A stretch of 64,000 nucleotides of DNA, taken from IMG/VR virus record IMGVR_UViG_3300025121_000011, positions 271,170 to 335,169 of that record; one strand, written 5' to 3'. Shown here one piece after another: positions 4,148 through 47,627 of this stretch (its first letter is position 1; each line of letters opens with the position of its first letter). Below the pieces are notes generated by a model. That model was not told where the DNA came from. It worked only from the letters and a program-made list of their open reading frames with translations, and did not search any database. Position numbers and translations under genes: made by a program.

Positions 4148-4386
4148 GCATGCAAGTACAAGTAGCTCTACCCAAAACAGAGGAAGAGATTCTCGCCTAT
4201 CTTCAGGGATTGCAACCTGGAGAGAGAGTGAGAGAAACTGGTAATTCTATGACAAATCAAGAAGGCGATGTCTCCATCAATGGACGTGGAAGCGTCTGTG
4301 TACTTTGGGATCCATTTGAAGATGGGAACCGGATGGGGACATCTATAACTTATGGCACACGAAGAGTGTCTGATCTAGAGGAATAG
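4144..4386 (+). CDS. hypothetical protein
   Basis: ATGA overlap with the upstream ORF. Confidence 0.55.
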   Translation: MSMQVQVALPKTEEEILAYLQGLQPGERVRETGNSMTNQEGDVSINGRGSVCVLWDPFEDGNRMGTSITYGTRRVSDLEE

Positions 4387-4423
4387 TATGTGATCGCAAT
4401 AAATTAGAGTTAAAATGTTCGCA

Positions 4424-4482
4424 GGCGGCAAAAACTTAACTGCATCTCTAAAAAAATATTCTACATAGTAATATAGGGCTGT
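4424..4482 (+). promoter_or_regulatory. repeated phage promoter-like motif upstream of a ~900-nt non-coding region
   Basis: GGCGGCAAAA...CTCTAAAAAAATATT...TAGTAATATAGGG with no ORF following. Confidence 0.65.
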
Positions 4483-4547
4483 GAGAGGAGCTAACTTGAA
4501 GGGCTAAAGAGTTTGTGGTGATGATAGTGTTAGTTGAGTTAACTTCT

Positions 4548-4622
4548 TTCACAGGACCTGGAGACTTCTCGGAAATATTTAAGATGGTATCATAACCGAC
4601 TGGCAGGGAGCCGCACGGCAAC
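4548..4622 (-). CRISPR. solitary spacer-like segment plus 36-nt repeat-like element
   Basis: 4548-4586 matches each of the three tandem Imm5-like genes at 34/39 (e.g. 24834-24872); 4587-4622 reads GTTGCCGTGCGGCTCCCTGCCAGTCGGTTATGATAC on the minus strand, present once only. Confidence 0.4.
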
Positions 4623-4952
4623 AAAGGGCGTTCACCTTAGGGTGGGGGTCTGCCAAAATGATCAAGCCAAGCCTTGCAGGTAGGAGTGACCGGCGAAACT
4701 CCCGTAACCTGAGTAGGAGAATGGCAAGACGTGAGGGACATGCAGTCGACCCTTAGGGATACGATAATCCCCATTTTTTAACATCGTTACAAATAAGTGT
4801 TTATTGAGTTTCACCAGTATCTCGGATAAAGGCGATGTTAAAGTTAAAACTGGTACTTGTTCTTAGCGGATCCCCGGCTCCGCGTTTGCCCAGAGGAAAG
4901 CCGAGAGACGTATAGTTTCTAACGGGTAGGCAGCATCGCAAGAGTGCCTGAT

Positions 4953-5152
4953 AAAAAGAGGTTATCGGTGGTTGGCTTAGAGGCAGCCATCCTTAATGAG
5001 TGAGACGATTGCCCCAAGGCGCAAAATGTCGGTAAGTGGTAACAGCTATGCCGATGATGTACCGGGGATAAACAGGGAAAGTGAAAGGCACCCCGTAACT
5101 GGTAAGGCCAATCTTCTCTTCAGCGTAATAGCACGCCGATATAATCTCTTTT
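4953..5152 (+). ncRNA. structured RNA resembling 23S rRNA helices 43/44 (L11-binding GTPase-associated centre), with an insertion
   Basis: GGTTGGCTTAGAGGCAGCCATCCTTAATGAGT...GCGTAATAGC, closed by the AAAAGAGGTTATCGGTG / CGCCGATATAATCTCTTTT stem. Confidence 0.65.
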
Positions 5153-5493
5153 AGGTAGGTCCACATGGAATAGCCAAGCGCTATGGGATCGAATATTATC
5201 GCATTTGGGAATGGTACTCTCCCGCTGGTTGTACCACCTTCTTAAGCGTCAGACATTTACAATGCATAATGCCGGTTAATTTTGCCGGTTAAAGTTGTGA
5301 ATGTAGAAAACACTTGTATATATAAGAACACAAGCAGTGACGTAAGTCTGTGATGATTCTATGCAGACACTCTATCATAAATTATAAAAGATGCGCAGCT
5401 TTAAAGCTGCGCATCTTCATTTATGTGTTGGCACAGGAAATGCATTATGCAAAAATCATGCCAGTTAATTATTGTGCAAAAATCAACGTCTCC

Positions 5494-5550
5494 GGCGGCA
5501 AAAACTTAACTTCTCTTCTAAAAAAATATTCTATAGAGTAACATAGGGCT
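5494..5550 (+). promoter_or_regulatory. repeated phage promoter-like motif
   Basis: GGCGGCAAAA...CTAAAAAAATATT...GAGTAACATAGGG; opposed sigma54-like pair at 5429-5463. Confidence 0.65.
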
Positions 5551-5564
5551 GTAGGAGAAACCAA

Positions 5565-5810
5565 ATGCCTTCCATCGATTATTCGGTATATATGAGGACC
5601 AGGTTACTGGACAAGGTAACCATGGCACAGCTGATAAAGGTTTGTAAAGATCGACAAGATCTGACCGTTACTCAGGAAGGTGACGATATCTTTCGTGTCT
5701 ATCTTGATGTTCCAGGAAATCTGAACGCTGTTAGGATTTTGGAAGCGATTCATCGCGCAGATCGTTGGTGGGATGTAGCTTATGATCTTCGTTTCATGAA
5801 AAGCCTATAA
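5565..5810 (+). CDS. hypothetical protein
   Basis: AGGAG RBS after the promoter motif. Confidence 0.65.
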   Translation: MPSIDYSVYMRTRLLDKVTMAQLIKVCKDRQDLTVTQEGDDIFRVYLDVPGNLNAVRILEAIHRADRWWDVAYDLRFMKSL

Positions 5811-7054: not shown

Positions 7055-7139
7055 GGGGGCGTGGCGGAAAGGCAGACGCGTCAGACTTAAAATCTGGTGA
7101 GCTTAGCTCGTGTGGGTTCAAGTCCCACCGCCCCTACCA
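7055..7139 (+). tRNA. tRNA-Leu(TAA)
   Basis: cloverleaf; anticodon arm TCAGA-ctTAAaa-TCTGG; long variable arm; encoded CCA. Confidence 0.93.
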
Positions 7140-10170: not shown

Positions 10171-10250
10171 AATCCGGTGGTAGCTCAGCAAGGTTAGAGC
10201 GCTCAGACAACTGAGAAAACGCGGGTTCAATTCCCGCCCCCGTATTACTA
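10171..10250 (+). ncRNA. tRNA-like element with a 4-nt anticodon loop
   Basis: D arm GCTC...GAGC; CTCAG-acaa-CTGAG; T arm GCGGG-TTCAATT-CCCGC; poor acceptor stem. Confidence 0.5.
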
Positions 10251-24438: not shown

Positions 24439-24935
24439 TCTCATCAAGAGATTTGATTCTTTTTATTAATCCTCCAAAATATTTATCCGTATTGATTGCT
24501 TATACAGTTGCCGCAGATGTTCTGCCTATATTTGAAAAGCATTTTCCGAAGGATTTGAGACCGAGAAAAGCTGTTGAAGCGTCTAAGATGTATTTGGATG
24601 GATATGCGGTTGATGCTGCTGCTTATGTTGATGCTCCTTCTGCTCATTATGCTCCTTCTGCTCATTATGCTGCTGTTGCTGTTAATGCTGCTGATGCTTA
24701 TGCTGCTGCTAATGCTGCTGCTAATGCTGTTTATTTTACGGCCAAAGATTCTTCCGAAGAACACATCTTTAACCTAATTTTATCTCTGCTTCCTCAGATG
24801 ATCGATTATGCTGTTGAAAATCAAGTTAAGTTATTCACCGGGTCTGGAGACTTCTCAGAAATATTTGAGATGTTAACCGATGAACAGAAGAAGCTGGTGA
24901 TATACAATATGGATGTAATTGGGAATTGGAAATGA
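24435..24935 (+). CDS. Ala-rich Imm5-like protein, tandem copy 1
   Basis: A..VLPIFEK.FPKDLRPRKAVEA followed by an Ala/Tyr-rich tract; GGAGG RBS. Confidence 0.75.
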   Translation: MISSRDLILFINPPKYLSVLIAYTVAADVLPIFEKHFPKDLRPRKAVEASKMYLDGYAVDAAAYVDAPSAHYAPSAHYAAVAVNAADAYAAANAAANAVYFTAKDSSEEHIFNLILSLLPQMIDYAVENQVKLFTGSGDFSEIFEMLTDEQKKLVIYNMDVIGNWK

Positions 24936-44597: not shown

Positions 44598-44662
44598 GGA
44601 ACAAATAGTTTAATTGGGAGAACATTGACGAAAGGTGTGGGTTCGAGTCCTGCTTTGATTTT
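44598..44662 (+). ncRNA. tRNA-like RNA lacking an anticodon arm (degenerate copy)
   Basis: D-loop-like segment and T arm GTGGG-TTCGAGT-CCTGC; paralogue of 44939. Confidence 0.4.
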
Positions 44663-44938: not shown

Positions 44939-45009
44939 GGGCCAAATAGTTCAAGTGGGAGAATATCGTCGCGAGAAGATGTAGGTTCAAATCCTACTTT
45001 GAGCCCCCA
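44939..45009 (+). ncRNA. tRNA-like RNA with a truncated anticodon arm
   Basis: GGGCCAAA/TTTGAGCCC acceptor; T arm GTAGG-TTCAAAT-CCTAC; CCA end. Confidence 0.55.
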
Positions 45010-46871: not shown

Positions 46872-46988
46872 TGCGGAATAGTGTAGTAGGGAGCACGCGT
46901 ATAATGTATCTTGATAAAGATGTATACAGCAATCAAACAAATCCATTGGGTGGACGAAGTATAGGTTCGAGTCCTATTTCTGCAACTA
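46872..46988 (+). ncRNA. tRNA-like RNA carrying a permuted stem-CAGCAA motif in the anticodon arm
   Basis: TGCGGAA/TTCTGCA acceptor; GTGT/GCAC D stem; ATAGG-TTCGAGT-CCTAT T arm; insert GTATCTTG-ataa-AGATGTATACAGCAA. Confidence 0.65.
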
Positions 46989-47534: not shown

Positions 47535-47627
47535 ATTTGAATAGCTTAGTGTCAAAGCGTTTGCGGCCTACTTCTTCGGATTCAAAAGCCGTAAAAGTCA
47601 TAGGTTAGATTCCTATTTCAAATACTA
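47535..47627 (+). ncRNA. tRNA-like RNA with an enlarged anticodon arm
   Basis: ATTTGAA/TTCAAAT acceptor; TTTGCGGC...GCCGTAAA stem with a 20-nt loop; ends ACTA. Confidence 0.55.

Follow-up and report, generated by a model that had tools for sequence, protein, structure and literature searches.

The complete genome of a groundwater jumbo phage of 335 kb carries a gene of about 200 nt that would specify a stable non-coding RNA built like the GTPase-associated centre (GAC) of bacterial 23S rRNA. The earlier note on this DNA had proposed a phage-encoded non-coding RNA that mimics helices H43 and H44 of 23S rRNA. This reading is strongly supported by sequence comparison within a family of 186 elements, in which covariation is found in every helix and in a tertiary triple. 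As possible functions, the note had named L11 binding and a decoy role towards factors such as RelA or ribotoxins; of these, L11 binding is the better supported.

The element in the phage genome

The window (the whole stretch of 64,000 nucleotides that was analysed) forms the final 64 kb of a virus record of 335,169 bp, which is complete and has direct terminal repeats. The sequencing runs that match it are DNA runs from groundwater and soil metagenomes, and an independent DNA contig from a groundwater run is identical over positions 4430-5700, with zero differences. The element is located at 4954-5152 on the + strand and occurs once in the phage genome. It resides in an unusually long gap of about 1.2 kb, between an ORF ending at 4386 and an ORF starting at 5565, which contains short ORFs only. 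The element follows the bacterial 23S consensus for H42-H44 through G1087-AGU. At this point, a 118-nt insert and a 4-nt 3' junction split U1090 from G1091, and the H44 hairpin and the closing stem follow. Up to and including G1087-AGU, and once more in GCGUAAUAGC, the sequence is identical to the bacterial LSU consensus. The parts of the element are as follows.

4954..4968, + strand: 5' strand of P1, the H42-like closing stem (outer part 4954-4961, inner part 4963-4968), which pairs with 5136-5152
4969..4993, + strand: H43-like hairpin (E. coli 1057-1081), with the landmarks G1062 = 4974, A1067 = 4979, G at 1070 = 4982, G1071 = 4983, C1072 = 4984 and A1077 = 4989; 1057/1081 is U.U in the window copy
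4994..5001, + strand: junction UAAUGAGU (about 1082-1090), with G1087 = 4998, A1088 = 4999 and U1090 = 5001
5002..5119, + strand: insert, with stem P2 (5002-5005 / 5115-5118) and its possible extension (5007-5011 / 5109-5113)
5012-5066, + strand: central irregular hairpin module of the insert, GCGCAAAAUGU-CGG...CCG-AUGAUGUAC, with a fold that is a prediction only
5087-5109, + strand: 3' module of the insert, with stems Pa (5087-5089/5107-5109) and Pb (5093-5095/5100-5102), internal loop ACC/UAAG between them and loop UAAC
5119..5122, + strand: 3' junction between P2 and H44, UUCA (family consensus UUUG)
5123..5135, + strand: H44-like hairpin GCGUAAUAGC and linker ACG, with G1091 = 5123, C1092 = 5124, A1095 = 5127, G1099 = 5131, C1100 = 5132 and C1102 = 5134 (presumed partner of G1087)
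5136..5152, + strand: 3' strand of P1, which pairs with 4954-4968

The strings quoted in the earlier note are all present (GGTTGGCTTAGAGGCAGCCATCCTTAATGAGT at 4970-5001, GCGTAATAGC at 5123-5132). Their spacing, given there as about 120 nt, is confirmed, as GCGTAATAGC begins 122 nt past the end of GGTTGGCTTAGAGGCAGCCATCCTTAATGAGT. The insert closes on itself as described, GAGACGATTG (5002-5011) pairing with CAATCTTCTC (5109-5118), and the outer stem that was said to enclose the whole is indeed found at 4954-4968 / 5136-5152 (6 bp, an internal loop and 8 bp), also in the MFE fold.

For an H43-type 17-mer with at most two mismatches, 0.03 occurrences per window are expected and one is present; chance resemblance is excluded for this 17-mer. 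When the 46-mer around it was compared to all 5,426 E. coli genomes, only 23S rRNA was matched, each match being short and having a weak E-value. A single-sequence fold of the window element is modestly better than those of shuffled sequences (z = -2.3), and the structural support is comparative, not thermodynamic.

The window junction UAAUGAGU is 1 nt shorter than the family consensus UNUAAAGAGU. The window copy (4967-5001) belongs to a subtype, together with those from loci L018, L034, L073, L076, L043 and L108, which has U at 1057 (U.U with 1081), has no unpaired nucleotide at 1056 and has a junction shorter by 1 nt with U1086 (UUAAUGAGU). Judged from these sequences, the changes at 1057, at 1056 and in the junction appear to travel together.

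Two other contigs from the same aquifer (runs X4 and X16) have a 30-40 nt H43 core in common with the window copy (4968-5008) and then continue with different inserts, which indicates that several family members coexist in the aquifer. The library of one of these contigs is labelled metatranscriptomic but is probably DNA.

Distinction from rRNA genes and from known RNA families

The earlier note had suggested an alignment to the LSU covariance model. In this comparison, the window gave no match and the related locus L075 only a weak local one (E = 0.042), because the insert splits the domain. With the bacterial model (RF02541), the best result is this 37-nt local match in L075, with 13.8 bits compared to a gathering score of 50. 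The complete 335 kb phage genome, compared to the same model, has neither an LSU match nor 23S flanks, and the model matches the bacterial control genomes (13/14 controls overall). Among the viral loci with the H43 17-mer (at least 118), the alignment to E. coli 23S rRNA covers at most 56 nt in every locus listed. The element is thus not an rRNA gene.

At the gathering score, Rfam reports only tRNAs in the window, and nothing credible is obtained for 4350-5600 at E <= 10. In 11 related loci, only tRNA and tmRNA were reported at the gathering score, with no match to ROOL, GOLLD or any other family. No family of Rfam 15 covers the element. Neither ARAGORN nor Rfam assigns a tRNA or tmRNA cloverleaf to it, the nearest tRNA in the window being at 7055, and no gene for uL11 (L11) was found in the phage genome. 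A BLASTn search with 4400-5560 against phages in GenBank gave no match, and relatives are found with the short conserved core alone. A full-text search of the open-access literature, which included the element sequence as a search string, returned no description; an account in a subscription journal would escape such a search. The RNA family, which is absent from Rfam 15 and undescribed in the open-access literature searched, appears to be new.

A family of 186 elements

Scanning IMG/VR for GGCTTAGRRGCAGCCAT retrieved at least 118 loci, and a scan for the variant with U1072 retrieved 61 further ones. A scan with the 3' half retrieved at least 120 viral loci and 106 prokaryotic contigs, about 37 of which also have the 5' half. 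The remaining prokaryotic 17-mer matches (about two-thirds) were treated as chance, since about 100 chance matches are estimated in 596 Gb. Locating 5' halves by P1 complementarity alone yielded false candidates, such as tRNA T-arms, and an HMM of the 5' half was used instead.

A search for homologues in phages had also been suggested, and it was productive: 186 distinct full-length elements were catalogued among the matches listed, with lengths of 91-431 nt and a median of about 200 nt. Nearly all listed loci have the 5' side P1-GGA-NG-UN-GGCUUAGARGCAGCC-AU-CN'-UNUAAAGAGU, followed by a variable body, and the 3' side UUUG-GCGUAAYAGC-ACA-P1'.

The elements originate from viral contigs, from cultured phages of Proteobacteria and Firmicutes, and from about 37 prokaryotic assemblies. 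Cultured carriers include Cronobacter phage GAP32, Pectobacterium phage CBB, Serratia phage BF, Erwinia pEa_SNUABM phages, Yersinia phage fHe-Yen9-04, Pseudomonas phage pf16, Aeromonas phage 4_4572, Ralstonia phage RSP15, Xanthomonas phage XacN1, Vibrio phage 2.275.O, Acinetobacter phage ME3 and Paenibacillus phage Pd_22F. The element is not annotated in cultured carriers, except that Pseudomonas phage Milchi and Erwinia phage Kaldavass each have a "hypothetical protein" CDS overlapping the match.

Covariation in the helices

For covariation analysis, we aligned 23 elements which have the 3' insert module of the window (alignment A1). RNAalifold recovered P1, both parts of H43, the two small stems of the insert module, and H44. 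When P2 is added, 95.1% of the cells show standard pairs, compared to 76.1% after shuffling of the columns (none of 500 shuffles attained the observed value) and to 32-48% when the partners are slid by 1-3 columns. Double changes are found in 18 of 28 pairs, and the covariation score is 0.538 versus 0.176. Covariation extends to all seven P1 pairs (with double compensatory changes), all four P2 pairs, Pa and Pb. A candidate pseudoknot (GG in columns 165-166, CC in 181-182) was rejected, being paired in 65% and lacking covariation.

The H43 hairpin (GGCUUAGAAGCAGCC; stems 1057-1059/1079-1081 and 1062-1064/1074-1076) has 98% of its cells paired. Reciprocal retrieval via the 3' half, which is unbiased with respect to H43, provided 94 distinct 5' halves. 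In these, the pair 1058/1080 is U-A in 39, G-C in 27, A-U in 22 and C-G in 5 cases, and 1057/1081 alternates between A-U and C-G.

These data bear on the possibility that the element is an inert host 23S fragment, or a coding or cis-regulatory region that resembles rRNA by chance. Short ORFs do overlap the element (4996-5154, +, 52 aa; 4993-5166, -, 57 aa). However, compensatory changes affect every helix as well as a base triple among the 186 distinct copies, and this covariation already contradicts an inert or coding sequence. The inserts differ in length and sequence, so that no reading frame is conserved. A 23S fragment is at odds with the lack of 23S flanks, and cis-regulation with the lack of an L11 gene that could be regulated in the phage. 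We consider this possibility extremely improbable.

The tertiary triple between H43 and H44

In the ribosome, C1072 of the H43 loop takes part in a base triple with C1092-G1099 of H44, as assigned in the comparative work of Draper and Gutell and in crystal structures. The corresponding positions were analysed in 111 distinct elements for which the 3' halves had been located without constraining 1092 or 1099. The combination 1072/(1092-1099) is C/C-G in 79 elements, U/U-A in 30, C/U-A in one and U/U-G in one. The rule (C/C-G or U/U-A) is thus kept in 109 of 111 elements, and the window copy obeys it with C4984.(C5124-G5131). Among members retrieved through an H44 with C-G, C1072 is found in 94/94. 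The U state occurs in 24 separate clusters of insert similarity, and three clusters of related inserts hold both states, which indicates that the three-way switch arose repeatedly. This covariation spans inserts of 58-363 nt and is, in our view, what argues most strongly for a packing of the two halves like that of H43 and H44, a packing which we infer from sequence.

H44 itself is present as a hairpin with the pairs G1091-C1100 and C1092-G1099 and the loop GUAAUA. G1087 is invariant among the members and presumably pairs with C1102, which was fixed by the search pattern. Position 1101 is A in the phage RNAs versus U in 23S rRNA.

Conservation of the L11 contacts and the proposed role of the RNA

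An isolated 60-nt fragment binds L11, and the contacts of the L11 C-terminal domain (CTD) are 1058-1060, 1062-1065, 1075-1083 and 1088 (PMC1802607). Thiostrepton and micrococcin contact A1067 and A1095 (PMC1802607). The toxin Tre23 ADP-ribosylates nucleotides 1095-1098 of H44 (PMC8661411).

Conservation was computed from unbiased samples, namely those retrieved by the 3' half and elements with unconstrained 3' halves. The published L11 contact nucleotides proved mostly to be 81-100% conserved or to covary. The values for the CTD contacts and the core are G1059 99%, U1060 100%, G1062 97%, G1063 100%, C1064 97%, U1065 91%, G1071 98%, C1075 99%, C1076 87%, A1077 100%, U1078 81%, C1079 99%, U1083 97% and A1088 100%; 1058/1080 and 1057/1081 covary, and 1082 is variable. 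In the junction, which matches the Rfam bacterial LSU consensus, AA at 1084-1085 and GAGU at 1087-1090 are invariant in 94/94 independently retrieved members. At the loop tips, U1094 is conserved in 100%, A1067 in 80%, G1068 in 81%, A1070 in 81%, A1095 in 89% and A1096 in 76%, and position 1097 is free. The difference between contacts and tips indicates that selection is strongest on the fold and on the L11-CTD surface and is somewhat weaker on the cleft used by thiopeptides, EF-G and Tre23. Because the tips are less conserved than the core, a partner that reads the tips would not be fully constrained.

We thus consider it likely that the RNA is an autonomous GAC domain which binds host uL11 off the ribosome. 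Binding of uL11 is favoured because the RNA retains the fold of the natural 58-nt domain as well as its L11 contact surface, and this binding is the best-supported functional step because the published L11-CTD contacts are among the best-conserved positions. The best explanation overall, which we regard as fairly probable, goes further and considers this stable RNA with a GAC fold and its off-ribosome binding of uL11 as a sponge or decoy. According to this explanation, 4954-5152 would be transcribed as a stable non-coding RNA and would fold on its own into the GAC tertiary structure, consisting of the H42 end, H43 and H44, with a variable accessory domain in the 3-nt bulge of H44. It would bind host uL11 off the ribosome during infection, and the resulting particle would display a copy of the factor-docking cleft of the ribosome. 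This particle may titrate uL11, or a host factor or toxin that docks on the uL11-GAC surface, to the benefit of the phage. The insertion site adjoins A1088, which is both a tertiary and an L11 contact, and steric compatibility is assumed. Counting against the explanation, the window copy deviates by U.U at 1057/1081, the missing nucleotide 1056, the shorter junction and G at 1070.

A related proposal is that the RNA, probably together with uL11, is a decoy for agents that attack the GAC (a toxin from abortive infection or from a competitor, or a thiopeptide), so that the ribosomes stay active. It overlaps with the best explanation and differs only in the molecule which is titrated. Phage tRNAs, which replace or evade targeted host tRNAs, provide an analogy, and the GAC-like elements share their genomic niche. 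Agents of this kind exist (Tre23, PMC8661411; thiostrepton, micrococcin), and U1094 (100%), A1095 (89%) and A1067 (80%) are conserved. However, the positions read by such agents (1095-1097, 1067) are the least conserved ones of the mimic and are strongly kept in the bacterial rRNA consensus. In addition, a decoy must outcompete very many ribosomes, and no GAC-directed anti-phage system was found in the literature searched. We consider this proposal rather unlikely.

The insert and its modules

Nearly all members are split between U1090 and G1091 and do not have a contiguous domain of about 58 nt; in loci L021 and L070, the H44-type loop is located a mere 12 nt after H43. The graft (P2, body, UUUG) enters before G1091, within the 3-nt bulge of H44, and G1087 and C1102 are kept. 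An Rfam LSU alignment of the 5' half from L075, obtained with a small search space, prints the bacterial consensus AgGUUGGCUUAGAAGCAGCCAUCcUuuAAaGAguGCGUAAuAGCUC together with a structure line. Across the family, the inserts have lengths of 58-363 nt and differ widely in sequence. The 3' module of the window (Pa, internal loop ACC/UAAG, Pb, tetraloop) is found in 34/186 elements and covaries; the central module (GCGMAAAUGY ... RUGAUGU) is found in 11/186. In six loci (L064, L067, L086, L090, L106, L124), an extra small hairpin directly follows GCAGCCAU and precedes the junction CNUNUAAAGAGU; as judged from sequence, this is a second tolerated graft point in the putative domain.

A hairpin of the sarcin-ricin-loop (SRL) type, exemplified by CCCGCAC-AGUACGAGAGGAAC-AGCGGG, is present in 4/186 elements, three of which are convincing (L075, L100 and L051; 364-412 nt). 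The window copy does not have it. The four members, all among the largest, are located as follows.

L075:2316-2679: element with convincing SRL-like hairpin
L100:8578-8989 (-): element with convincing SRL-like hairpin
L051:3691-4065 (-): element with convincing SRL-like hairpin
L084:3423-3805: element with SRL-like hairpin

There are 4 such hairpins in 40.7 kb of elements versus 8 in 6.3 Mb of loci (a number that includes those 4), an enrichment of about 150-fold. In the largest members, AGUACGAGAGGAAC, AGUACGAAAGGAGC and AGUACGGGAGGAA are found within stems, and there are further common blocks, such as GUGNCGAGUGGAAGAG. BLAST comparison of the inserts to other 23S regions returned nothing significant beyond GAC and SRL. 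Only L075 has a hairpin resembling H91, and conservation of this hairpin does not extend to the subclass of L075.

In the factor site of the ribosome, the SRL represents the second rRNA element, and bL12 sits on the GAC beside uL11. The window phage encodes two ORFs of 88 and 81 aa that resemble the C-terminal domain of bL12 (L7/L12). They score above the Pfam cut-off, have the motif GDKISxIKAVRxxTGxGLxExKDAVE, lack the N-terminal uL10-binding domain, and lie 12-15 kb upstream.

G000:C1:260905-261171 (L379:1441-1707): bL12-like ORF, 88 aa
G000:C1:263664-263909 (L378:1468-1713): bL12-like ORF, 81 aa

The RNA might be a miniature off-ribosome docking site for translation factors, consisting of the GAC (plus the SRL in the largest members) and completed by uL11 and the stalk or by phage bL12-like proteins. 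Off the ribosome, such a particle would interact with the GTPases of translation, with RelA or with GTPase-like defence proteins; we consider this unlikely. In a related version, which we judge to be slightly less likely still, the RNA mimics the whole factor site and, with uL11 and perhaps stalk proteins, sequesters or mis-activates translational GTPases or RelA. The stringent response needs uL11, and it might, for example, be blunted. The SRL hairpin (AGUACGAGAGGAAC in a stem), enriched about 150-fold and present in three of the largest members, and the two bL12-like proteins argue for such a whole-site mimic. On the other hand, the SRL is convincing in 3/186 elements only and is absent from the window copy, and productive factor binding by an off-ribosome GAC domain is a supposition. 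The bL12-like genes co-occur in only 4 of 50 large element-bearing viral records, which does not indicate a general linkage, and we do not claim a partnership.

Genomic context and expression

The context was analysed for 238 elements; for 155 of them, the fetched locus also contains tRNAs. Among these 155, the median distance to the closest tRNA is 195 nt, 115 have it within 500 nt, and 154 are on the tRNA strand. Spacers to an adjacent same-strand tRNA are typically 3-14 nt, on either side. The position in tRNA arrays and the short spacers suggest that the RNA probably shares a transcript with tRNAs, from which the enzymes of tRNA processing release it, and this context fits an abundant, processed and stable RNA. 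In the related locus L003, a tmRNA is immediately upstream of the GAC-like element.

The tRNA-like spacers of 3-14 nt and the shared strand (154/155) would also be consistent with a structural or processing element of phage tRNA precursors, in which the resemblance to the GAC is the reuse of a robust fold. However, the copies of the window, of Mimasvirus and of Eneladusvirus are not beside tRNAs, and generic stability leaves the near-invariant unpaired A1088, G1071, U1060 and A1077 unexplained. We consider such an element highly unlikely. In the Mimasvirus and Eneladusvirus phages, the GAC-like element occupies a 290-nt intergenic gap and a U run follows the closing stem. Unlike the copies in tRNA arrays, that of the window is 2 kb away from the nearest tRNA (7055). 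The neighbours of the elements are tRNAs or small hypothetical genes, and the elements are not in the location of ribosomal protein leaders.

In the window, the surroundings of the element have two features that may delimit a transcription unit.

4424..4475, + strand: copy of a promoter-like motif (GGCGGCAAAAACTTAACTGCAnCTCTAAAAAAATATTCTnnATAGTAA) that precedes the element by about 480 nt and may serve as a promoter
5388..5417, no strand assigned: strong bidirectional terminator-like hairpin of 13-14 bp, which would end the non-coding unit; the next promoter-like repeat is at 5494

The motif GGCGGCAAAAACTTAACTGCAnCTCTAAAAAAATATTCTnnATAGTAA, of which at least 10 copies are present on the + strand of the window, probably represents a phage-specific promoter class. 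It is about 55 nt long and is found before genes on the + strand at 1210, 3294, 4424, 5494, 7504, 8663, 8788, 9657 and 11387. The copy at 4424..4475 is a likely start of a non-coding transcription unit, and 4424-5417 resembles a dedicated non-coding unit. Another short repeat, present at 4537-4589, is found again at 24824, 25388 and 25906. The regions 4483-4950 and 5153-5387 are devoid of a convincing ORF and have no relatives among the fetched loci. Upstream, 4560-4800 and 4855-4955 fold no better than shuffled sequences; 4699-4719 (CUCCCGUAACCUGAGUAGGAG) vaguely resembles the 3' module of the insert, and a weak terminator-like site is at 4756-4771.

Among the runs listed, the window is contained in DNA runs only and the element in no RNA library, and no contig from three small libraries labelled metatranscriptomic covers it. 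Several tRNAs were reported by Rfam but not by ARAGORN (10174-10244, 44599-44661, 44940-45005, 46872-46985 [114 nt] and 47535-47624 [90 nt]); these may be atypical or intron-bearing phage tRNAs. The phage also has a tmRNA (G000:C1:13455-13817) with the tag peptide VKVVIKKSIAELKLAA.

Comparison with known systems and significance

In 23S rRNA, the GAC (H42-H44, E. coli 1051-1108), also called the L11-binding or thiostrepton domain, is a high-affinity site for uL11, and thiostrepton binds to it cooperatively. The phage RNAs share with this domain the H43 hairpin and its loop, the U1082-A1086 turn, the G1087-AGU bulge, H44 and the closing helix. They also share the triple 1072.(1092-1099), which switches between C.(C-G) and U.(U-A), the retained G1071, and the conserved L11-CTD contacts. 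They differ in being free-standing genes of 91-431 nt rather than part of a 2.9 kb rRNA, in the variable graft of about 40-350 nt that separates U1090 from G1091, and in the more variable loop tips (1067, 1095-1097).

Several operon leaders of ribosomal proteins mimic rRNA. Examples are those for L1, S8, S15 and L20 and that for L10, whose leader is similar to the adjacent H42 site. In both cases, an RNA off the ribosome copies the rRNA site of a ribosomal protein. However, the leaders are cis-acting mRNA elements of cellular genomes, which represent a minimal site upstream of the regulated ribosomal protein gene, whereas the phage RNA is a separate gene in tRNA arrays, represents a whole tertiary domain, and has no ribosomal protein gene downstream. 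We know of no mimic of the L11 site. The niche in phage tRNA arrays, a complex conserved structure and a function that is not known are features in common with ROOL and GOLLD, but the GAC-like RNA is much smaller, consists partly of a recognisable rRNA domain and has no Rfam match. Phages are known to use RNA decoys or replacements, such as tRNAs that escape defences directed at tRNAs, RNA anti-CRISPRs resembling CRISPR repeats, and pseudo-ToxI antitoxin RNAs. The likeness to these is in concept only, a phage-made copy of a host RNA surface that titrates or replaces; here, the copied object would be a functional centre of the ribosome.

If our interpretation holds, this is the first viral RNA family modelled on a functional centre of the ribosome instead of on tRNAs or CRISPR repeats. 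It is widespread yet unannotated, being present in hundreds of viral contigs from many environments. Its culturable carriers include phages of Enterobacterales, Pseudomonas, Aeromonas, Vibrio, Acinetobacter, Xanthomonas, Ralstonia and Paenibacillus, so that the hypothesis is directly testable. The family also represents a natural experiment on the GAC fold, in which a 58-mer that has been studied for decades tolerates a large graft at one point while the triple is kept. It would provide a tangible starting point for studying how large phages manipulate translation or escape immunity directed at it. A particle that displays a docking site, if it indeed exists, would represent a new principle, in which phages take over the host or counter its defences by mimicking a functional centre of rRNA.
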